Sequence record: OQ427096.1
DNA: 64,000 bases
Direction: 5' to 3' (one strand)
Position numbers and translations under genes: made by a program. A model generated the notes under the pieces. That model saw only the letters and a list, made by a program, of their open reading frames with translations, was not told the DNA's origin and ran no database searches. Numbering within the stretch: the stretch's first letter is position 1; each line of letters starts with the position of its first letter. Below are positions 47,627 through 61,884 of the stretch, piece by piece.

Positions 47627-48676
47627 ATGCAGCATGATCTCGCAGTTTTCATCGGGCGTTTCCAGCCTTTCCATCTGGGCCACCTCCACGCTATTGAGGA
47701 AGGCCTCAAGCTCGCCAAGAAGGTTCTCATCCTGATCGGTGACACCGGTGGTCCTCGTGGCCTCAAGAATCCCTGGACCGCAGAAGAGCGGAAGCAGATG
47801 ATTCTGGATTCGCTAGGCACCTACCAGCGCGAACTCGTAATGTTTGACATTGCATACGACATGCCGTCCAACACGGAATGGGCTGGTCAGATTCAGAGCA
47901 TTGTCAGCAACGCCTCGAACTGGCATAAGCTGCCCAGCGTAATTCTGATCGGTCACGAGAAGGACGCGTCGAGCTTCTATCTCAAGATGTTCCCGCAGTG
48001 GAAGCACATCGACACCGGCTTCGAAGAACTGGAAAGCGGACTTCTCCGCAAGTACAACGCCACCGACATTCGCAAGATGGTCTGGACGAACACGCTGCAT
48101 TACGCAACGGGTCTCCTGCATCCGACCACGCTGACCTACCTGGTCAATCACATCAAGCACAACCCAGCTATCTATGAAGAGTTTCTCGAGGAATACGGCG
48201 CCATACAGGCTTATCGCAAGGCGTGGGCAGGTTCGCCGTTCCCGCCGATGTTCGTCACCACTGACTGCGTGGTTATCCAGAGTGGCCATATTCTTCTGAT
48301 CAAGCGAGGCGACCGACCTGGAAAGGGTCTTTGGGCGTTGCCCGGTGGCTTCCTGGATCAGACCGAGTCCATCCAGGATGGTGCTCTGCGTGAACTGAAG
48401 GAAGAGACGAACATTCACCTGCAGGATGATGTGCTTCGCCGTTGCATTGTTCGCACTTTCGTCCATGATCGTGCAGGCGGTGTCAGTGAAGAAGACCGTG
48501 GCAGAATCATTACGCATGTGCATGTCGTCAAGCTTGCCGACGGGAAGCCACTGGCCAAGGTCAAGGGCGGCGATGACGCAGCCGAAGCACGCTGGGTTCC
48601 GTTGGGCGAAATCAACTACCGTGAGATCTTCTCCGACCACGGAAAGATCATTGACCGCGCCCTGAGTGGCGTCTGA
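47627..48676 (+). CDS. nadM: Bifunctional NMN adenylyltransferase / Nudix ADP-ribose pyrophosphatase
   Basis: FIGRFQPFHLGH; Nudix box WALPGGF.DQTE....ALRELKEET; GGDDA. Confidence 0.96.
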   Translation: MQHDLAVFIGRFQPFHLGHLHAIEEGLKLAKKVLILIGDTGGPRGLKNPWTAEERKQMILDSLGTYQRELVMFDIAYDMPSNTEWAGQIQSIVSNASNWHKLPSVILIGHEKDASSFYLKMFPQWKHIDTGFEELESGLLRKYNATDIRKMVWTNTLHYATGLLHPTTLTYLVNHIKHNPAIYEEFLEEYGAIQAYRKAWAGSPFPPMFVTTDCVVIQSGHILLIKRGDRPGKGLWALPGGFLDQTESIQDGALRELKEETNIHLQDDVLRRCIVRTFVHDRAGGVSEEDRGRIITHVHVVKLADGKPLAKVKGGDDAAEARWVPLGEINYREIFSDHGKIIDRALSGV

Positions 48677-48685
48677 GGAATTATC

Positions 48686-49144
48686 ATGAAGGACGTTATC
48701 AACGGCTTTTTCGAAGAAGCAGAACGTTTGCAGGCTCTGGCAGAAGAACAGCGCAGCAAGGCTGCTGCAATCCTGACACCGCTGTTTGATCTCCAGCATC
48801 GGCTTGCATGGTTTGTTCACTGCGAGCCTGAGTTCAAAGAACTGGAAAAGTGGTATCGCAAGCCGCGTGATAGGTTCGCAACCAATGCGAACCGTCAGCA
48901 TTCTTACTACACTTTCGACGGAAGTTTCTACGATCTCTGTGAATGGAGTGACGGTGACTCGGCTGACTCCATTGAGCTGCATCCTATCTTCCTGACAGAT
49001 GCTTCTGAGGAAGAGAAGAAGGAAGTAATTCGACAGGCATATCGTGCTGATATCGCAGCTGTAGAAAATCAGAAGCAACGCGCGAAAGAAGCTGAGCTGG
49101 AAAAGGCTCGCAAGCTTCTCGCTGAAAACGGTGTGTCTTTCTAA
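48686..49144 (+). CDS. Hypothetical protein
   Basis: GAGG RBS. Confidence 0.65.
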   Translation: MKDVINGFFEEAERLQALAEEQRSKAAAILTPLFDLQHRLAWFVHCEPEFKELEKWYRKPRDRFATNANRQHSYYTFDGSFYDLCEWSDGDSADSIELHPIFLTDASEEEKKEVIRQAYRADIAAVENQKQRAKEAELEKARKLLAENGVSF

Positions 49145-49192
49145 GGCACACTGTTAGACTATAATCACACCAAACGTAGAAAGGAGTTTTCT

Positions 49193-50638
49193 ATGATTTT
49201 CAATCCGATCCTTGCAACAGACAGCTACAAGTTCTCGCACTTCATGCAGTACCCGAAGGGTACCACTATCGTCAAGAGTTATGTCACGGCGCGTGGCAGC
49301 AAGATTCCTGGCGTTACCGCAGTGGTTTGTGCTGGTCTGCAAATCTTCATTCACGAATATCTCAGCAAGCGCGTGACCAAGAATCACGTCGATCAGGCTG
49401 AGGCATTCTGTGCCAAGCACGGCGTTCCTTTCAACCGCGAAGGTTGGGACCTGATCGTCAACGATCACAACGGCTACCTGCCTGTCGAGATTCGCTCGGT
49501 TGAGGAAGGTACGCCGGTGCCGCTCAATGAGCTTATGATCTCCGTAATCAACACTGACGAGCGTCTGCCGTGGGTGACCTCGTATATCGAGACGCTCCTG
49601 CTGAGCTATGTCTGGTATGCCTCGACTGTGGCAACCAAGAGCCGCGAAATCAAGAAGGTCATCAAGCAGTACCTGGACATCACGTCGGACAATGCTGATG
49701 TGGAACTTCCGTTCAAGCTGCACGACTTCGGTTACCGTGGTGCAACTCCTGGCGCAGCTCATGTTGGTGCCTTCGCGCACCTGATCAACTTCATGGGTAC
49801 TGATACCGTCGCCGGCATCGAAGCTGCAATGGAGTACTACGGTTCGGATGTCTGTGGTTACAGCATCTCGGCTTCGGAGCATTCGACGATGACCAGTTGG
49901 GGTCGCGATGGTGAGTTCGATGCCTACCGCAACATGGTTGACTCCTACGCCAAGCCCGGTGCGATCTTCGCCTGCGTGATCGACAGCTACGACACCTTCG
50001 CAGCAATCGATATGTTCTGTGAAGACCGTTGTGCAGGTGGCTCGCTCCTGGACATCGTCAAGAACCGCGGTGCAACCATCGTGCTCCGCCCTGATAGCGG
50101 TGACCCGATCCAGATGCCAATTGACGTCATCAAGTACCTGATGGAAAAGGTCGGCTACGAGATCAACAACAAGGGTTACAAGGTCCTGCCGAGCCATGTT
50201 CGAGTGATTCAGGGCGATGGCATCGATATTGAAGACGTTGAGCACATCCTGGAGACCCTGGTCGAGGATGAAAAGATCAGCGCCTCGAACATCGCATTTG
50301 GCATGGGTGGCGGACTCCTTCAGAAGGTGAACCGTGATACGTTCAAGTTTGCTATGAAGGCGTGCCTGGCATACATCAACGGCGAAAAGGTAGACATCAT
50401 CAAGGATCCGGTCACTGACCCTGGCAAGAAGTCGAAGGCAGGCGACCTGAGCGTCTATCACAATCCGGAAACTGGAGAGTGGAAGACCATCACTGAAGGT
50501 TCGCTGGATTCGTTCGCTTTCAACAAGCCTTCGAGCAATTGGTATCGCAAGGACTATGTTGTCTATAGCCACTACGGTCGCGATACTTTCTTCGACTATG
50601 TGGACATGGATACTGTTCGTAGGAATGCTGCTCTTTAA
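49193..50638 (+). CDS. nadV: Nicotinamide phosphoribosyltransferase
   Basis: TDSYKFSH, LHDFGYRG, SISASEHS, VIDSYD, RPDSGDP, IQGDG, FGMGGGLLQ, RDT, KKSKAG. Confidence 0.97.
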   Translation: MIFNPILATDSYKFSHFMQYPKGTTIVKSYVTARGSKIPGVTAVVCAGLQIFIHEYLSKRVTKNHVDQAEAFCAKHGVPFNREGWDLIVNDHNGYLPVEIRSVEEGTPVPLNELMISVINTDERLPWVTSYIETLLLSYVWYASTVATKSREIKKVIKQYLDITSDNADVELPFKLHDFGYRGATPGAAHVGAFAHLINFMGTDTVAGIEAAMEYYGSDVCGYSISASEHSTMTSWGRDGEFDAYRNMVDSYAKPGAIFACVIDSYDTFAAIDMFCEDRCAGGSLLDIVKNRGATIVLRPDSGDPIQMPIDVIKYLMEKVGYEINNKGYKVLPSHVRVIQGDGIDIEDVEHILETLVEDEKISASNIAFGMGGGLLQKVNRDTFKFAMKACLAYINGEKVDIIKDPVTDPGKKSKAGDLSVYHNPETGEWKTITEGSLDSFAFNKPSSNWYRKDYVVYSHYGRDTFFDYVDMDTVRRNAAL

Positions 50639-53522: not shown

Positions 53523-54044
53523 ATGAATCAATTTCGATATGCAGGTATAGGATCTCGTGATACTCCTGTCTCCTTAAAACAAACGATGATGGACATAGCT
53601 TACTTCTTAGCGTATGAAGCTAATGCTATTCTCGTATCCGGTGGAGCTCGAGGTGCTGATTCGTTCTTTGAGGAAGGATGCGATCGTGCAGGTGGTAACA
53701 AAGAGATCTGGTTGCCAGAAGCAGGCTTCAATGGAAGCAAGTCTAAGTTGATTGGTGCATCGAAGGATGCCTATATCGTAGCTGAGCGATATGTAGGTCA
53801 TTGGAAGAACTGTAAGGCATGGGCACGAGCAGCACACGCACGAAACTGTCATCAGGTTCTCGGTGCCGATCTCCTCACTCCCGTTTCTTTCGTAGTGTGC
53901 TGGACACCTGGAGGTGAGAGAGTTGGTGGCACTGCTACAGCGATTTCTATTGCAGAAGATAAGGGCATTCCTATTCTCAACCTTGGATCGAAAGACTGGT
54001 CTGAGACAGAAATTTCTGATTGGCTAGAAATCCGGCTAAATTGA
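53523..54044 (+). CDS. SLOG-superfamily (DprA/YspA-like) nucleotide-binding protein
   Basis: YAGIGSR.TP, LVSGGARGADS.FE, RN..QVLG, GGTATA. Confidence 0.8.
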   Translation: MNQFRYAGIGSRDTPVSLKQTMMDIAYFLAYEANAILVSGGARGADSFFEEGCDRAGGNKEIWLPEAGFNGSKSKLIGASKDAYIVAERYVGHWKNCKAWARAAHARNCHQVLGADLLTPVSFVVCWTPGGERVGGTATAISIAEDKGIPILNLGSKDWSETEISDWLEIRLN

Positions 54045-54098
54045 CCTTTCTAGGTACTGTCTGTAGACTGTATGGACTAAGGTGATTGGGAGTTAGTC

Positions 54099-54670
54099 AT
54101 GGGTTACGGAACACGTCCGAACAATTTCGGTGGAAACATCAGAACTTTCCAGCCTGACAATACGAAAGATGTGCTGTACATCGACACGACTTTTTCGTCG
54201 GTCACGCTGAAGGAACTCATGGAGAAGATCCGTGAACACTTCGGCAGTGATGATATCGAGAAATTCGATATCGAGGCTCAGTACATCCACACGGATTGCC
54301 TGGGCTACGACTGTTATGACCCCGGTGACTACTCCAGCTTCATCGTCATCACTCGCACAGGAATCCTGTAATGGCTGCTCGATTCAGTCGTCACGCGAAG
54401 CCTCTCTACCGTATCAACCAGCACGGTGAGCTCTACAAGGCGAGTGAAGAATTCAAGACCACCATCCGTCGAGCTGGAGTCTGGAACCGCCCTGCATGTT
54501 TCCGTTGGTGGGCTGAAGGATGCCGAGAGATCAACACCTGGGTATTCGATTCCCAGGGTCAGCATCGTCTCATTGTTGGATACGATCCTGAGACTGACCT
54601 TCTGTATCTCGGGCGCACCTTGACCGAAGAACGCCACCTCCCCAACCGTTTTAAGAATCGAGACATCTGA
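54099..54670 (+). CDS. Two hypothetical proteins (54099-54371, 54371-54670)
   Basis: Behind promoter TTGACC-N17-TAGACT (54041-69). Confidence 0.6.
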
Positions 54671-55617
54671 TGACTGCTCTGCTGATTGGCTCCAACGCAC
54701 TTCGCGCACACGGCATCGCTGTTGAGCGCAGGAACCTGGACATGGACTTCATTGCTACGATGGATTCCATCAAGGCGATGATCGATCGGAACAAGACGCG
54801 CTTCGTCAAGATTCAGCACAGCGAAGATGCGAACCATCTGTTCATGTTCCCTCGTAATGGGAACGACGCCATCTTCGATATCGAAATCGCATGGCTCGAT
54901 TCTGTCAGTGATACCCTCATTGACATCGTCCTGAACAACGGCCTCTACAAGATGACCGAGGAGGGCTACTACGCCGTTTCTCCGTCGGTTGTGCTGGCAC
55001 TCAAGCTGTCGCACAAGTACAAGAAAAACTCGCGTCACTTCCTGAAAACGATGCGCGACATTCAGATGCTCAAGGGACTTGGCTACAAGGTTCCGAAGTG
55101 TCTGAGTGAGTGGCTCAAGGATCGCAAGAAGTGGACCTACGACTATAAGCATCCCAAGTTGGAAGGTGGTGTGACCAAGGCTGACTTCTTCAAGGACGAT
55201 GGCATTCGCTATGTCTACGATCACGACAGCATCCACGTCGCAGTGAAACATCTGCACCAGCCCGCCTATCGCTACTTCCAGCCTGACGGTGAGGAAGTGG
55301 GCACGTCGAAGGAAGACTTCTTCGCTCAGCCGCGTGAGGTACAGCTTCTGGCAGTCCTCGAGGAAAGCTATGTGCTGAGTCTCGAGCGCGCCATTGTTCC
55401 GTTCAACTTGAAGACTATCGAGCAGCGGAAGAAGGCTTTTGACACTGCTCTGGAAAAGGTCTGCACGAGCATCACGTCTGGTTGGTTCCGGAAGTTTGCC
55501 TGGGATAACTTTGACGAAGTGAATGACCTGTATAATCAGGAATATGTGGACCGCTTCTGGCTCGAAGTCGAAAGCGGCAATGTGAAGCCCTACGTGAAGG
55601 AAGAAAATGCTTACTGA
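54670..55617 (+). CDS. Minimal pol-beta-type nucleotidyltransferase with helical C-terminal domain
   Basis: LLIGSNAL...NLDMDFI (GS, DxD), FDIEI. Confidence 0.75.
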   Translation: MTALLIGSNALRAHGIAVERRNLDMDFIATMDSIKAMIDRNKTRFVKIQHSEDANHLFMFPRNGNDAIFDIEIAWLDSVSDTLIDIVLNNGLYKMTEEGYYAVSPSVVLALKLSHKYKKNSRHFLKTMRDIQMLKGLGYKVPKCLSEWLKDRKKWTYDYKHPKLEGGVTKADFFKDDGIRYVYDHDSIHVAVKHLHQPAYRYFQPDGEEVGTSKEDFFAQPREVQLLAVLEESYVLSLERAIVPFNLKTIEQRKKAFDTALEKVCTSITSGWFRKFAWDNFDEVNDLYNQEYVDRFWLEVESGNVKPYVKEENAY

Positions 55618-55852
55618 AACTGCAAAGGCGTCTATTATCCAAAAGGTCGAAGAGATCAAGGCGCTGATGGATGAAGCAAAGCTGATCGGGCGCATTGACG
55701 TCTCAGGTCGCGATGCATACCCAGGCGATTTCGTGATCGACGAGATCCGCACCATTGCTCCGGCGGGCTCTGAGCATTGGTCGCACAGTTCGTGCTGGGA
55801 TGATGAACCTGTCCCTTATGACCCGCCCTCCTGGAATGCGAGTAACTGCTAA
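55607..55852 (+). CDS. Small protein with two W-x-x-S-x-C motifs
   Basis: ...WSHSSC...WNASNC*. Confidence 0.7.
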   Translation: MLTETAKASIIQKVEEIKALMDEAKLIGRIDVSGRDAYPGDFVIDEIRTIAPAGSEHWSHSSCWDDEPVPYDPPSWNASNC

Positions 55853-56043
55853 TGGCTAAAGATGATTTCGATCAGCGAGTTGAAGTAATCAAGCTCCTTG
55901 TCAATGAACTGGATAAGGAGTTGTCTGAACTCAATGTCAGGCACAATGTCGATTACAAGATTGACATGCAAGTCCAAGACAAGCATGGTTCTTACATCGT
56001 AGGCACATCGGAGTCCAGCGACTGGTCTGCGAGTTGGTGCTGA
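55852..56043 (+). CDS. Small protein ending WSASWC
   Basis: Helical N-terminus, motif at the C-terminus. Confidence 0.7.
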   Translation: MAKDDFDQRVEVIKLLVNELDKELSELNVRHNVDYKIDMQVQDKHGSYIVGTSESSDWSASWC

Positions 56044-56061
56044 TAACTGTCCTATAAAGGA

Positions 56062-56322
56062 ATGATAATGAAGAAGATTCTGTTGGTTGCTGTTCTGGCT
56101 GCCGTTGTTGGACTGTCGGGTTGTACCGATGCAGAACGCGCAAGCTGGGGCTCGCTGGGTGAGCAGGCAAAGGTCACCTGTTACAGCGGTGGTCAGGTCA
56201 TCAAGGAATACGAGTCCACCGGTAAGGTGATGAAGCTCGATGGTGACGGCTTCGCCTTCAAGAACAAGGAAACTGGCAAGTTCGTTCGCGCCTTCGCCGA
56301 CTGTCTGGTGGAAGAGAAATGA
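56062..56322 (+). CDS. Lipoprotein
   Basis: MKKILLVAVLAAVVGLSG-C lipobox. Confidence 0.78.
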   Translation: MIMKKILLVAVLAAVVGLSGCTDAERASWGSLGEQAKVTCYSGGQVIKEYESTGKVMKLDGDGFAFKNKETGKFVRAFADCLVEEK

Positions 56323-56549
56323 TCAGTCCTTGTGATGGCGGCGGAAGTGTCGACCCGGGTCGCGCCAAGTTTGAGGAAGCTGTCTTCCGGCAGTATTTCA
56401 TCAAGCATGTTGGAAGTGATCTGAGGATGAAGCCAGGTATCGTCAACAAGGCTGAGTTCTGCAAGCGGGACGAAAATGGTAACTACGTGCGCGAAGAAGT
56501 AAGCGCAATGTGGTTTGGTTGGAAACTTTATCAGAAGGAAAACGTGTAA
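56319..56549 (+). CDS. Hypothetical protein
   Basis: ATGA-coupled. Confidence 0.6.
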   Translation: MISPCDGGGSVDPGRAKFEEAVFRQYFIKHVGSDLRMKPGIVNKAEFCKRDENGNYVREEVSAMWFGWKLYQKENV

Positions 56550-56728
56550 TGACCGTCGAGAAAGAACGTCATCAGAAGATCGCCGCACTCCTGGACAGTG
56601 CTTCCAAGCAGCTGGAAGAGGCACGCCAGTTGGCAGGCAACGACACCTATCACTGGTCTGGTCCTACCTATGGTATGGGTGGCTGGATCGAGTCTGGCGA
56701 ATGGCAGGCATCTAGCCATTCTTGCTGA
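56549..56728 (+). CDS. Small protein ending GPTYGMGG...WQASSHSC
   Basis: Paralogue of 56739-56963. Confidence 0.72.
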   Translation: MTVEKERHQKIAALLDSASKQLEEARQLAGNDTYHWSGPTYGMGGWIESGEWQASSHSC

Positions 56729-56738
56729 GGAATGAGAA

Positions 56739-56963
56739 ATGGAATACGCTGATTTTGAAAGCCGTAAGAAGCGCATCGAGCAGTTGATTGGTGAGGCTGA
56801 GGGCCTGCTCGAGGAAGCTCGCGAAATGTCCGATGGTCTCTTTGATGAAGGAGCAACGCGCTCCTGGCAGGCAAAGCCGTCATTCAGGTTTGAAGGCCCT
56901 ACGTATGGTATGGGCGGGTCGCTGCAGGATGGCGAATGGTTTGCATCGAGTCAGTCGTGCTAA
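56739..56963 (+). CDS. Small protein ending GPTYGMGG...WFASSQSC
   Basis: Paralogue of 56549-56728; GAGG RBS. Confidence 0.72.
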   Translation: MEYADFESRKKRIEQLIGEAEGLLEEAREMSDGLFDEGATRSWQAKPSFRFEGPTYGMGGSLQDGEWFASSQSC

Positions 56964-56978: not shown

Positions 56979-57011
56979 GGGACATTGGCACTTCGGTGCC
57001 TTTGTCCTTTT
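56979..57011 (+). terminator. Intrinsic terminator
   Basis: GGACA-TT-GGCAC-TTCG-GTGCC-TT-TGTCC-TTTT. Confidence 0.8.
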
Positions 57012-57033: not shown

Positions 57034-57561
57034 ATGCAACGTGACTTCATCGAAACCTGGTCTGGCGTCAACCTATACATGCCTGACCCAGATCCGGAAT
57101 CCATCCTCATCGAAGACATTGCGCACGCTCTGTCGAAGGTGTGTCGTTTTGCCGGTCATGTGGATCGCTTCTACTCTGTAGCTGAGCACTCCATCCACGT
57201 CTCCTACGCTGTACCTCCGGAACATTCTCTGCAAGCACTTCTGCATGATGCGACTGAGGCTTACCTGTGTGACATTCCTACTCCGTTCAAGCGGATGATT
57301 CCTGCCTATGCGGAACTGGAAGACAATCTATGGGCAGTGATTGCTGAAAAGTTTGGCGTGCCGTTCAAACTGCACGAGACTGTCAAGCTGGCGGATCGAA
57401 TGCTGCTCCTGTCGGAACGTGATGCACTCAAGGAACACTCCAAGCGCCAATGGCCTGCGGAATACGAGAACCATCGTCGTTGGGAAGGCTTCTATGAAAT
57501 GAACCTGACCCAGGAACAAACTGCTCGTGTCTTCCTCAAGCGATTTTCAGCTCTTCGGTAG
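57034..57561 (+). CDS. HD-domain phosphohydrolase (YfbR/YfdR-like)
   Basis: IEDIAHALS..CRFAGH...YSVAEHS, LLHDATEAY..DIPTPFK. Confidence 0.88.
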   Translation: MQRDFIETWSGVNLYMPDPDPESILIEDIAHALSKVCRFAGHVDRFYSVAEHSIHVSYAVPPEHSLQALLHDATEAYLCDIPTPFKRMIPAYAELEDNLWAVIAEKFGVPFKLHETVKLADRMLLLSERDALKEHSKRQWPAEYENHRRWEGFYEMNLTQEQTARVFLKRFSALR

Positions 57562-60568: not shown

Positions 60569-61433
60569 TTGATTATGAGCAGGCTGGAAGATTTTGTTAT
60601 GCCGGTAGGGACCGAAGAGATTCTCTTCATTGATGGCGAGCATCGTGTGGTAAAGATGACCGTCATTGATCGCCGTGAAGCAGGTATTAATCTGTTCCAC
60701 AATTTTCATATCCGTATGTTGCAGGATGCACATTTCATCTATGGTTTGAAAAAGAAAGAGGTTCTAAAGTCTCGTTGGGGTCACATGACACCTGATGAAT
60801 CTTTTGACCTTGCTCAGTCACTTAGCAGGATCGCGCTGGACCTCGGTCTGGTAGTTGGCAATGGAGTGAGGATTTAATTATGTGCGTTGTTTCGATGATT
60901 GGTGACTCGTTCCAGGATCGTTGGAAGGATCGTCTTCCGAATGATTGGACCATTCCGGCAATGCCGATGCCTTCGCAGCCTATGGCACCTCCGTTCAAGG
61001 AGCGCCGCATTGATGTATCGCATCCGTTCCAGGCGATCAGTCGCGTTGAGTTTGACCTCCTGAAAAAGGAAGTCGAAATCATGAAGGACCTTCTGGAGCG
61101 TGCTATCAAGTACGACAAGGACAACAATGAGCCTCATTGCGAGACGGAGAGCAAGATCGCATTCCTCAAGCAAGTGGCAAAGGCTGTTGGCGTTGACCTT
61201 GAAGAAGTCTTCGGTAAATAACAATGAAGAGCTTTTTTGACGAACAGGGTAGCTTCAATGAGGACGCCCGACAGTTCACAAAAGACGCGCAAGAGATCCT
61301 AAGGCCATTAATGCAGAAATATGCCGGTGCCGGATTTAGCTCGCGTGAAATAGTTTACCTCATTTCAGATGTGGCTTCGATTGAAGAGATCTACATCCGC
61401 CAGGTAAAGAGAATCAGAGATAAGCGTCCTTAG
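60569..61433 (+). CDS. Three hypothetical proteins (60569-60877, 60880-61221, 61224-61433)
   Basis: Closely spaced ORFs; the last stop codon lies inside tRNA-Val. Confidence 0.6.
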
Positions 61434-61499
61434 ATCAGTTGGTAGATCATCTGCTCGACACGCAGAAGGCCACAGGTTCAAGTCCTGTAGGACGCACCA
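61424..61499 (+). tRNA. tRNA-Val(GAC) with C33
   Basis: GCGTCCT/AGGACGC stem, loop TCGACAC, TTCAAGT T-loop, encoded CCA. Confidence 0.9.
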
Positions 61500-61505
61500 A
61501 GTTTT

Positions 61506-61583
61506 GCCTTAGTAGAGAATTGGTAGATCGGCTCCGCTCAAAACGGAGTGTCATTGTCGGTTCGAGTCCGACCTGAGGCACCA
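61506..61583 (+). tRNA. tRNA-Leu(CAA) with an unusually short variable region
   Basis: GCCTTAG/CTGAGGC, loop CTCAAAA, TTCGAGT, CCA. Confidence 0.88.
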
Positions 61584-61585
61584 AG

Positions 61586-61765
61586 ATGACAAACGAAGAA
61601 AAGATCGCTGCAAAGGCAGCAGAAGTAGTACACTACGAAGGAGTCCTTGAACGTTACGGTTCGGGTCGCTGGCTTGACATGGGTCGCCGTCACCTGGCTG
61701 AATTGAACAGGGAACTTCAAGAGTTACGCTCTCAAAGTATTGATGGTGATACGCCGCCCTCGTAA
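61586..61765 (+). CDS. Possible 59-aa ORF between tRNAs, ending inside tRNA-Thr
   Basis: MTNEEKIAAK...; GAGG of the tRNA-Leu 3' stem lies 7 nt upstream. Confidence 0.45.
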   Translation: MTNEEKIAAKAAEVVHYEGVLERYGSGRWLDMGRRHLAELNRELQELRSQSIDGDTPPS

Positions 61766-61802
61766 CGCGGATAAGACAGTTCAAGTCTGTCTGAGAGCAC
61801 CA
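61728..61802 (+). tRNA. tRNA-Thr(CGT)
   Basis: GCTCTCA/TGAGAGC, loop CTCGTAA, C31:C39 mismatch, CCA. Confidence 0.88.
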
Positions 61803-61808
61803 AAACCT

Positions 61809-61884
61809 GGCTATGTGGGTGAGCGGTTTAGCCGACGTCCTCATAAGGCGTTTCACACTGGTTCGAATCCAGTCATAGCCACCA
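61809..61884 (+). tRNA. tRNA-Met(CAT), elongator type (Ile2 not excluded)
   Basis: GGCTATG/CATAGCC, loop CTCATAA, CCA. Confidence 0.88.

Follow-up and report, generated by a model that had tools for sequence, protein, structure and literature searches.

The window analyzed here, a stretch of 64,000 nucleotides from sequence record OQ427096.1, corresponds to Xanthomonas phage X1, and every ORF named in an initial annotation of its sequence was recovered where that annotation had placed it. The genes of interest form a tightly packed block on the + strand, in which stop and start codons overlap. A promoter-like site (54041..54069, +) lies 5' of the block; it had 9/12 matches in a consensus scan, which is weak evidence, and sites of this kind are not overrepresented there relative to shuffled sequences. 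The block opens with a 90-aa ORF of unassigned function (54099..54371, +) that found no match in family searches, PADLOC included, and that is kept in close relatives only according to neighbour clustering. It is followed by a 99-aa ORF, likewise without an assigned function (54371..54670, +), whose stop codon overlaps the start of the next gene; this ORF matched no Pfam or PHROG family and has a dN/dS of 0.09 in comparison with phage BUDD. The next gene (54670..55617, +) encodes a 315-aa protein with a predicted nucleotidyltransferase (NTase) fold and overlaps, as had been noticed initially, the first of four small ORFs, the overlap being 11 nt long. We refer to these as P1 (55607..55852, +; 81 aa, acidic, net charge -8), P2 (55852..56043, +; 63 aa, acidic, net charge -6), P3 (56549..56728, +; 59 aa), and P4 (56739..56963, +; 74 aa, net charge -7), all of them located within 1.4 kb. 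Their description as ORFs of 59-81 aa ending in a Trp/Ser/Cys tail with Cys as the last residue was confirmed in each case, the tails being WNASNC (55832-55849), WSASWC (56023-56040), WQASSHSC (56702-56725), and WFASSQSC (56937-56960), respectively. P1 holds an extra internal copy of the motif, WSHSSC (55778-55795), and the length of P3 is counted from the annotated ATG, with an alternative GTG start possible at 56510. The four ORFs do not form the uninterrupted run first proposed, being split between P2 and P3 by a lipoprotein-like ORF with a signal peptide and lipobox (56062..56322, +) and a 76-aa ORF of unassigned function (56319..56549, +), both outside the conserved module. The former had LPAM and PHROG matches, both weak, and neighbour clustering found no co-conservation of this ORF beyond the X1/BUDD clade. 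The block is closed by a terminator-like hairpin with a T-rich tail (56987..57010, +; hairpin proper 56987-57000); this single hairpin is what stands of the strong terminator initially annotated, and sites of this type are no commoner in the region than in shuffles. Several NTase loci, the X1 window included, lie near tRNA genes.

The NTase gene matched Pfam families DUF7277 (E 1.9e-14, 54.5 bits) and DUF7275 (E 1.5e-65, 221 bits), both above the gathering cut-off of 27 bits, and phrog_2141 over its full length (E 9e-105). The DUF7277 segment (aa 4-78; 54679..54903, +) would be the catalytic core and carries the G-S, D-x-D, and E carboxylate motifs, while DUF7275 (aa 108-290; 54991..55539, +) is predicted to be an all-helical C-terminal domain, highly conserved and a candidate for acceptor binding. 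None of the residues G7, S8, D24, D26, and E72 varies among 29 homologues. Specifically, G7 and S8 provide, near the N-terminus, the hG[GS] motif of the pol-beta-type NTase superfamily, and D24 and D26 provide its [DE]h[DE]h pair, with E72, on strand 68-73 of the AlphaFold2 model, as the third carboxylate. In the same homologues the DUF7275 domain is rich in invariant residues (His, Asp, Glu, Lys, and Arg) and has one Cys, Cys265, that is nearly invariant. The AlphaFold2 model (pLDDT 91.6), in which the DUF7275 part consists of helices, was queried against the PDB with Foldseek, and the top matches were all NTases. Three of them, namely two MenT1 chains and the NTase-like structure 5uvd, had E <=1e-3, and CCA-adding enzymes, ANT(2'')-Ia, Cid1, TUT4, and LnuA followed at lower ranks. 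The closest solved structure was MenT1 8an4 (E 5e-5), whose chain A aligned over 179 columns with 13% identity and TM scores of 0.52 (target) and 0.35 (query). Sequence searches against the PDB, with the single sequence and with a profile, gave no match, and no member among the 29 matched the DUF1814/AbiEii Pfam family at E up to 10; two of them weakly matched DUF6036, an NTase family of unknown function. Beyond the two DUFs, searches of Pfam, NCBIfam, and PADLOC with the enzyme and the small proteins returned nothing informative, and the two PHROGs that were matched (phrog_2141 and phrog_899) both lack an assigned function. With its motifs invariant in the 29 homologues and its predicted fold matching only NTases at the top ranks, the proposed identification of ORF 54670-55617 as a pol-beta-type NTase holds. 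The predicted enzyme appears active, because its catalytic residues are invariant, and it looks like the transferases that act on hydroxyl groups, since its structural neighbours include MenT1, ANT(2'')-Ia, and LnuA. An HD-phosphohydrolase identity for DUF7275, for which the cue was an invariant His...His-Asp...His pattern, was not supported when its profile was compared with that of the HD protein encoded in the window (probability 2.3%).

Among the 300 + strand ORFs with at least 30 aa in the 64-kb window, P1-P4 are the sole ones that end in the motif. Their dN/dS values versus phage BUDD (0.28, 0.24, 0.10, and 0.19 for P1 to P4) indicate that they are real genes. They evolve at a very different pace from the enzyme: between X1 and BUDD the NTase is 97% identical (dN/dS 0.04), whereas the partners are only 37-86% identical, P1 being the most divergent with 37% amino acid identity to its orthologue, and the tail remains fixed. 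The presence of GPTYGMGG in two of the small ORFs was borne out for P3 and P4, which also matched an HMM of the YGMGG/Cys-tail family (E 1.6e-18 and 2.1e-16, respectively), while P1 and P2 did not (E 0.13 and 0.83). Therefore, the view of the four as paralogues can be kept for P3 and P4, the only two whose homology, with one another and with the YGMGG family at large, is provable by profile comparison; P1 and P2 seem tied to the family by their tail, position, and general build only. Against phrog_899, a profile of 221 columns, P3 scored E 2e-4 and P4 E 0.033, in both cases with only the C-terminal 77-79 columns aligned, and P1 and P2 gave no match. An N-terminal helix had been attributed to each small protein; P4, the one protein modelled with AlphaFold2, has a confident helix at residues 6-33, while all other residues, including the low-confidence tail, have pLDDT 50-67; the tail is flexible in this model.

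Two forms describe the tail, W-x-x-S-x-C and W-x-x-S-S-x-x-C, both of which place the Cys at the very C-terminus; we hereafter call it the tag. When sequences are anchored on the Trp, Ser is found at W+3 in 98-100% and the terminal Cys in 100% of them, in either of the two registers (52 and 117 sequences), so that the Ser-to-Cys spacing is fixed at i to i+2 or i to i+4. Searching 1.84 billion proteins yielded 881 cluster representatives of the small proteins at E up to 1e-3. At 50% identity, 139 of 143 cluster representatives end in the exact tag, with the match extending to the very end of the protein in all cases, those of 124-254 aa included. Of 120 homologues, which have a median net charge of -9, 88 contain no Cys other than the terminal one. 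Internal, non-terminal copies occur in 12 of 180 proteins, so that not every copy can depend on a free C-terminal carboxylate. Alignments showed that the sequence of the N-terminal helix is poorly conserved across the family while the tail is invariant; ten long members (110-254 aa) had no fused domain in Pfam, and a search with a 148-aa Acinetobacter member retrieved only two relatives. The tag is the sole element common to all of the small proteins.

To what extent the small proteins and the NTase are linked in other phages had been posed as the test that could refute their association, and we found them tightly linked in both directions. On the side of the enzyme, 72 of 80 viral contigs carry one to six tail ORFs on the same strand and within <=3 kb of the NTase; among the eight that do not, three are truncated upstream and one more has a near-variant tail. 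Four viral NTase loci have no tail ORFs within 2.5 kb. Across 82 related loci, 191 of 4756 ORFs on the gene strand end in the motif versus 4 of 5652 on the opposite strand. All-against-all clustering of neighbours, which relies on BLAST alone, placed the small family near the NTase in 59 of the 82 loci and the next-best neighbour family in only 9, and the tail family is the only one that travels with the enzyme. On the side of the small proteins, a degenerate DNA pattern for P-x-YGMGG-x-Y gave 37 true matches, 27 of them with the NTase in the same locus; the remaining 10 were cut at the expected edge or fell on contigs where the NTase is known to be present, one of these 10 being a tail-gene copy unlinked from the NTase in a 305-kb phage. 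The enzyme was thus present in all loci open to evaluation by this search. Two further independent contigs show the same layout, as do RB69, where the module sits between e.3 and e.2 amid ORFs not annotated as T4-like, and a T4-like phage of Acinetobacter. Tail genes are 5' of the NTase in most loci and 3' of it in the X1 clade, with adjacency kept, and the NTases of co-occurring pairs are only ~38-45% identical, with completely different other neighbours. Genes resembling NampT were neighbours in no more than 9 of the 82 loci, and a link to NAD salvage was discarded in favour of a shared accessory region. The NTase was detected in 733 phage records, including RB69, with Escherichia, Klebsiella, Acinetobacter, Aeromonas, Pseudomonas, and Vibrio among the hosts, and is essentially absent from cellular genomes: the 6 matches in collections of these were all MAG contigs, and all 6 carry tail ORFs just upstream. 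No tail ORFs were found within 3.5 kb of distant DUF7275 homologues in phages of Gram-positive hosts (Bacillus phage G and one phage each of Streptomyces and Gordonia), which, together with the four viral loci mentioned above, suggests that the enzyme may also work without tagged partners. Since the two-way linkage extends over very different phages, the enzyme/partner system with the tail as its shared element, as initially put forward, is well supported, and we regard it as very probable that the enzyme and the tagged proteins are functionally coupled.

Several explanations were weighed. The motif can arise by chance, as shown by its presence at the end of an ORF that runs antisense within the NTase gene (54813-54938, -), but the bias of 191 to 4 motif ORFs between strands in the 82 loci, the purifying selection on P1-P4, and the 881 representatives among 1.84 billion proteins refute chance ORFs or an annotation artefact, whose probability we consider negligible. 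Rather improbable is a linkage without interaction, in which the tail would be read by a host protease, chaperone, metal ion, or packaging route and the NTase would be co-inherited in an accessory cassette. The location of the module in hyperplastic accessory regions such as that of RB69, the tail gene apart from the NTase in the 305-kb phage, and the NTase loci without tail genes are consistent with it; however, co-occurrence spans NTases of ~38-45% identity with wholly different neighbours and adjacency persists although gene order flips, the pattern predicted by functional coupling and not by hitch-hiking. Because the tag is the only shared element and the enzyme the only constant neighbour, the likeliest of the readings is that the enzyme recognises and modifies the tag, and we propose tentatively, somewhat short of an even chance, that the tag is its covalent substrate. 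Nucleotidylation of the tail Ser or Cys would be plausible for the predicted fold. HepT-MntA (HEPN-MNT), a type VII toxin-antitoxin system in which a minimal NTase AMPylates its partner protein, offers a parallel, as its substrate is encoded beside the NTase; nevertheless, it has one partner and no C-terminal tag in place of tagged arrays, and no protein of the X1 block matched HEPN/MNT families in Pfam or PADLOC. The small-molecule O-nucleotidylyltransferases ANT(2'')-Ia and LnuA, which are among the better structural matches, are built like the phage enzyme of two domains, an NTase core and a helical domain for the acceptor, and transfer NMP to a hydroxyl, the chemistry that may apply to the tail Ser, but their acceptors are antibiotics and not proteins, they lack linked partner genes, and they have no sequence similarity to it. 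Counted against a protein substrate is that the nearest solved relative of the fold acts on tRNA (PMC10435456, PMC7450476).

A somewhat unlikely alternative is that the small proteins serve not as substrates but, like the MenA antitoxins, as regulators or specificity adaptors of an RNA-directed NTase (e.g., one acting on tRNA 3' ends, like its nearest structural relative). Their N-terminal helix would bind the enzyme and their tail would plug or re-shape the active site, restraining or redirecting the choice of substrate or nucleotide, with several paralogues conferring several specificities. The top solved match is MenT1, a member of DUF1814/AbiEii-type pairs in which an NTase-fold enzyme is likewise encoded beside a small helical partner, and PMC11375011, along with PMC10435456, describes the small antitoxin of MenT1 as acting through its N-terminal helix and shifting nucleotide specificity. 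The confident helix of P4, the proximity of several loci (X1 among them) to tRNA genes, and the tight packing with overlapping codons also fit. Yet the helix is poorly conserved and the tail invariant, up to six paralogues per phage with bodies of 60-250 aa are unexpected for an antitoxin, and the structural match is modest (TM 0.35 by query, 0.52 by target). The phage enzyme does not belong to DUF1814/AbiEii at the sequence level (no match at E up to 10, none in PADLOC), its DUF7275 helical domain is much larger and differently conserved, and the neighbours of the X1 NTase in the block matched no antitoxin family in Pfam or PADLOC. Moreover, MenT/MenA is a chromosomal toxin-antitoxin pair while the phage module occurs in phages only, and MenA has no reported Trp/Ser/Cys tag, whereas the phage partners are very acidic, tagged, and arranged in arrays of one to six. 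According to PMC11375011, MenT1 is able to phosphorylate a protein Thr within its own active site, and enzymes of this clade can pass phosphate to a protein hydroxyl, similar to what is proposed for the phage tail. A special case of the substrate model, which we find very doubtful, is maturation of a lanthionine-like thioether, with the Ser activated by phosphate or NMP, converted to dehydroalanine, and closed into a ring with the terminal Cys thiol. It draws on the spacing of two residues alone, which is fixed, with both 98-100% conserved and the Cys unique in most members; the invariant His/Asp/Glu and near-invariant Cys of the helical domain could bind metal or serve as a base. Lanthipeptides of classes II-V also phosphorylate Ser before elimination. 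On the other hand, we know of no NTase-fold dehydratase, Pfam detected no known lyase or cyclase domain, and the partners are proteins and not leader-plus-core peptides. Short tandem genes beside an enzyme, a conserved Ser-Cys pair of constant spacing close to the C-terminus, and a helix-linker-tail layout reminiscent of leader plus core do recall RiPP precursors such as those of lanthipeptides, the likeness suggested initially. This proved a poor fit: partners of 60-250 aa have a structured helix, with members of 124-254 aa among them, Pfam identified no recognised RiPP maturase, the NTase is the only co-conserved gene in the 82 loci, and no leader peptidase or exporter is co-conserved, no other neighbour family occurring in more than 9 of these loci. 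Taken as a whole, the initial interpretation is partly supported; the small proteins may also be baits, inhibitors, or specificity subunits, as it proposed.

The module is phage-specific and made of two parts, an apparently active NTase-fold enzyme with an N-terminal catalytic core and a conserved helical domain, and a variable set of very acidic small proteins, which would combine a helical N-terminus with a flexible acidic linker and which end in a near-invariant tag. We infer that the cleft separating the two domains of the enzyme may receive the flexible tag for modification with an NTP, the invariant Ser being O-nucleotidylated or phosphorylated, or the terminal Cys being modified. The bodies of the tagged proteins, which evolve fast, would then be directed to different host targets early in infection. 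It is unlikely, in our estimate, that the enzyme installs a new modification on a dedicated tag, either a Ser-Cys thioether ring via elimination or a stable protein-nucleotide conjugate, as a phage-only one-tag/one-enzyme system that matures acidic effectors against host targets or defences. The genomic logic of one enzyme serving otherwise unrelated proteins with a short C-terminal tag is that of sortase/LPXTG, exosortase/PEP-CTERM, and CaaX systems. In these, the enzymes are membrane proteases, transpeptidases, or prenyltransferases and the clients are exported or membrane proteins, whereas the phage enzyme has a predicted cytoplasmic NTase fold and its partners have no signal peptides.

Both the NTase and the small-protein families are annotated only as hypothetical. 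Neither the small proteins nor their pairing with the enzyme has a Pfam family or name, no paper in our literature search mentions these DUFs, PHROGs, or RB69 ORFs, and a broader search returned nothing relevant, so that the pairing of an enzyme with tagged partners appears to be an undescribed system. One conserved enzyme accompanied by arrays of diverging acidic proteins that keep only an eight-residue tag points to an enzyme-tag logic that has not been described for phages, and some of the phages with the module belong to genera used in phage-therapy work. Hundreds of orphan early genes become accessible through a small, testable set of residues, namely the single Ser, Cys, and Trp of the tag and the three catalytic carboxylates. 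Covalent modification of the tag would amount to a new protein modification; if instead the small proteins are adaptors, the paradigm of MenT-type NTases would extend from bacterial toxin-antitoxin systems to the take-over of the host by phages.

The nucleotidyltransferase (NTase) gene of Xanthomonas phage X1 (54670-55617, + strand; 315 aa in the six-frame ORF list; coordinates in record OQ427096.1 are window coordinates + 62000) overlaps the first of four small acidic proteins by 11 nt, as the initial annotation had claimed. This protein, P1 (55607-55852, +; tail WNASNC; net charge -8), is followed by P2 (55852-56043, +; WSASWC; -6), P3 (56549-56728 from the annotated ATG, +; WQASSHSC; -3) and P4 (56739-56963, +; WFASSQSC; -7), with a terminator-like hairpin (56987-57000) downstream of P4. 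The six-frame ORF list bore out the proposed Trp/Ser/Cys endings: the last residue of each of the four is Cys, and they are the sole gene-strand ORFs with such an ending across the 64-kb window. All members of the four-ORF run described behind the NTase are present, but the run is interrupted between P2 and P3 by two unrelated ORFs, one encoding an 86-aa lipoprotein-like protein with a signal peptide and lipobox (56062-56322, +) and the other 76 aa long (56319-56549, +). Both are kept in the related Xanthomonas phage BUDD (dN/dS 0.16 and 0.15), whereas other phages do not conserve them, and the former has weak PHROG matches that include the Cor-type superinfection-exclusion family (E 0.0086). 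The region is 86.6% identical between X1 and BUDD, and all genes of the module are labelled 'hypothetical protein' in both records.

The neighbours of the block are a DprA-like protein on one side (53523-54044, +; phrog_768, E 6e-50) and an HD protein of the deoxyribonucleoside 5'-monophosphate phosphatase type on the other (57034-57561, +; phrog_318, E 5e-66). Genes for tRNA-Val, tRNA-Leu, and tRNA-Met are annotated approximately 4.5 kb further along (about 61424-61881), and a NAD salvage pair (nicotinamide-nucleotide adenylyltransferase and nicotinamide phosphoribosyltransferase) is annotated a few kb upstream (47627-50638, +). Within the NTase gene, an antisense ORF of 41 aa (54813-54938, -) ends in WFASSLC, as it does in BUDD; it is one of just four opposite-strand motif cases among 82 loci, and its ending is taken as chance.

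In Pfam the enzyme consists of DUF7277 (aa 4-78) and DUF7275 (aa 108-290), and in PHROGs it belongs to phrog_2141, all of them families without known function. Its initial designation as a pol-beta-type NTase is supported by the signatures G7-S8, D24-x-D26, and E72, which do not vary among 29 homologues (42-77% identity), and by structural matches. Specifically, the closest solved structures to the AlphaFold2 model derived from the 29-homologue alignment (pLDDT 91.6, pTM 0.86) were NTases throughout, headed by the Mycobacterium tuberculosis toxin MenT1 (8an4, E 5e-5) and followed by an NTase-like fungal protein and then by CCA-adding enzymes, ANT(2'')-Ia, Cid1, and LnuA. PDB sequence searches with the enzyme found nothing, and membership of the MenT/AbiEii family was not supported by the Pfam family search. 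Within its known superfamily the enzyme forms a new branch that is uncharacterised. Its matches among predicted viral structures were other DUF7275 proteins and, more distantly, poly(A) polymerase catalytic subunits. Two of these DUF7275 proteins (A0A3G5AJ90 and A0A3G5AE53 in BFVD; 508 and 571 aa) come from the metagenomic giant viruses Sylvanvirus and Satyrvirus, and the enzyme family therefore extends to viruses of eukaryotes. In some phages (e.g., Acinetobacter phage Acj61 and Pseudomonas phage KIL4; BFVD) the match covers the DUF7275 part alone (query ~99-308) or the locus carries an HNH endonuclease annotation. DUF7277-only and DUF7275-only proteins were also found as separate entries, so the two domains can have separate genes.

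Orthologues of all four small proteins are present in BUDD, where the Trp, the Ala-Ser pair, and the terminal Cys do not vary, and their dN/dS ratios of 0.10-0.28 identify P1-P4 as genuine coding genes. Between the two phages the enzyme is 97% identical and its partners 37-86%, with the tail unchanged. An internal W-x-x-S-x-C copy within P1 (55778-55795, +) is retained in the BUDD orthologue despite 37% overall identity; at least two motif copies occur in 12 of 180 distinct tail proteins, and one protein of viral locus L117 apparently carries three (tail read by eye). The four had been described as paralogues. This held for P3 and P4, which are clear homologues in profile matches (E 1.6e-18 and 2.1e-16), but not for P1 and P2, which fell below significance in the same family profile comparison (E 0.13 and 0.83). 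Judging from sequence, P1 and P2 are joined to P3 and P4 solely through tail, build, and position.

When the 180 distinct tails were anchored on their last Trp, two registers covered 169 of them, one of eight residues (n = 117; Ser at W+3 in 100%, Ser at W+4 in 83%, Cys at W+7 in 100%) and one of six (n = 52; Ser at W+3 in 98%, Cys at W+5 in 100%). A profile of the YGMGG subfamily, which includes P3 and P4, retrieved 881 cluster representatives from 1.84 billion proteins. Its matches invariably reach the last residue, also in proteins of 124-254 aa, and the exact tag ending was found in 139 of the 143 representatives checked. The terminal Cys is the sole Cys in 88 of 120 homologues, and the median net charge of the homologues is -9. 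The small proteins matched no Pfam, NCBIfam or PADLOC model, and no known domain was found in the N-terminal extensions of the long members. The N-terminal helix proposed for the small ORFs was recovered with confidence in P4 (residues 6-33), the one modelled with AlphaFold2; the remainder of this model, tail included, is of low confidence and probably flexible.

A survey of W..S..C peptides beside this NTase family, suggested by the initial annotation, revealed a close association. Among 80 viral contigs fetched around the enzyme gene, ORFs of 30 aa or more that end in W-x(1-3)-S-x(0-4)-C numbered 191 on the gene strand versus 4 on the opposite strand, and 72 of the 80 loci had one to six tail ORFs within 3 kb. 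Most of these lay upstream of the enzyme gene (161, median gap 457 nt), the downstream arrangement (15) being that of the X1/BUDD/Stenotrophomonas-phage clade. Three of the eight loci without tail ORFs are cut upstream, and one has an extra residue past the Cys. Clustering of all gene-strand neighbours showed that the small family alone accompanies the enzyme: it occurs in 59 of 82 loci by BLAST alone, and the next family, NampT-like, in 9. No Cys-tail ORF was found within 3.5 kb of the DUF7275 gene in phages with distant homologues (28-33% identity), namely Streptomyces phage Beuffert (L133), Gordonia phage Culver (L134), and Bacillus phage G (L132). This gene adjoins a tRNA cluster in Culver; in phage G, a nearby gene is noted as poly(A) polymerase.

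The linkage was also examined from the small-protein side. Absence of linkage in other phages had been named as part of the evidence that would refute the proposed system. A degenerate DNA pattern for P-x-YGMGG-x-Y retrieved 41 viral stretches, comprising 37 true family members and four unrelated long ORFs. The enzyme gene was present in the locus of 27 of the 37, and the other ten were cut on the enzyme's expected side or lay on contigs otherwise known to carry the enzyme. One of these ten, in a 305-kb phage, is truly unlinked (L117 8781-9059, -); it is the sole clearly unlinked copy, and its contig also holds L049 with the NTase. For two database proteins on independent contigs, a DUF7277/DUF7275 gene likewise follows downstream after a few small genes.

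The enzyme was represented by more than 1200 clusters, none of them named, in a search of 5.8 billion proteins, and by 733 of 50,697 phage records in tblastn. Escherichia phages accounted for 260 records, including RB69 (ORF134c), and others were from phages of Acinetobacter, Aeromonas, Pseudomonas, Vibrio, Klebsiella, and Myxococcus, Bacillus phage G, and actinophages. A search of 185,579 cellular genomes gave six matches in all, each on a MAG contig with tail ORFs directly upstream, and we therefore consider the module a phage property. In RB69 it lies between e.3 and e.2, amid ORFs without annotated similarity to T4 genes, and comprises the tagged ORF137c and ORF136c, an apparently split copy (ORF139c/138c), and the enzyme. 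The split copy (L084 2869-3175) occupies different frames with one apparent frameshift and bears the tag on the second ORF; it represents a paralogue in decay or else a gene with a frameshift. Upstream of its enzyme, an Acinetobacter T4-like phage carries three genes with the tag or a near-variant of it. Ribose-phosphate pyrophosphokinase-like and phosphoribosyltransferase genes lie directly downstream of the module in the Acinetobacter phage.

Since the tail is the sole feature common to the partner subfamilies and the enzyme their sole constant neighbour, the simplest reading of these sequences is that the enzyme would recognise the tail. A C-terminal tag that is flexible and keeps one hydroxyl and one thiol invariant resembles an acceptor site, and structural relatives of the enzyme transfer NMP or phosphate to hydroxyl groups (PMC11375011). 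For these reasons we favour, as an inference, a scheme in which the NTase would modify the tag of its partners, whose diverging acidic bodies would act on host targets. This reading has limits: tail genes are missing near the distant DUF7275 homologues of phages that infect Gram-positive bacteria and from a few enzyme loci, and motif copies also occur internally.

In the main rival reading the partners may regulate an RNA-directed enzyme or serve as its adaptors. The precedent is MenA1, a small antitoxin that bears an N-terminal helix, controls the NTase MenT1 and shifts its nucleotide preference (PMC11375011, PMC10435456). However, the helix of the phage partners is poorly conserved in sequence whereas the tail is invariant, and a single phage may encode as many as six paralogues. 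We give low weight to the formation of a thioether ring in the tag and to linkage of enzyme and partners without interaction.

Neither a curated model nor a name exists for the partner family, and we found no paper on the enzyme family, the partner family or their pairing. The module resembles both NTase-plus-small-partner pairs and tag-plus-dedicated-enzyme systems, yet comparison of defining features placed it with neither. We assign it to NTase-fold enzymes having a dedicated protein partner, as a variant not described before, and it may carry out a categorically new protein modification.
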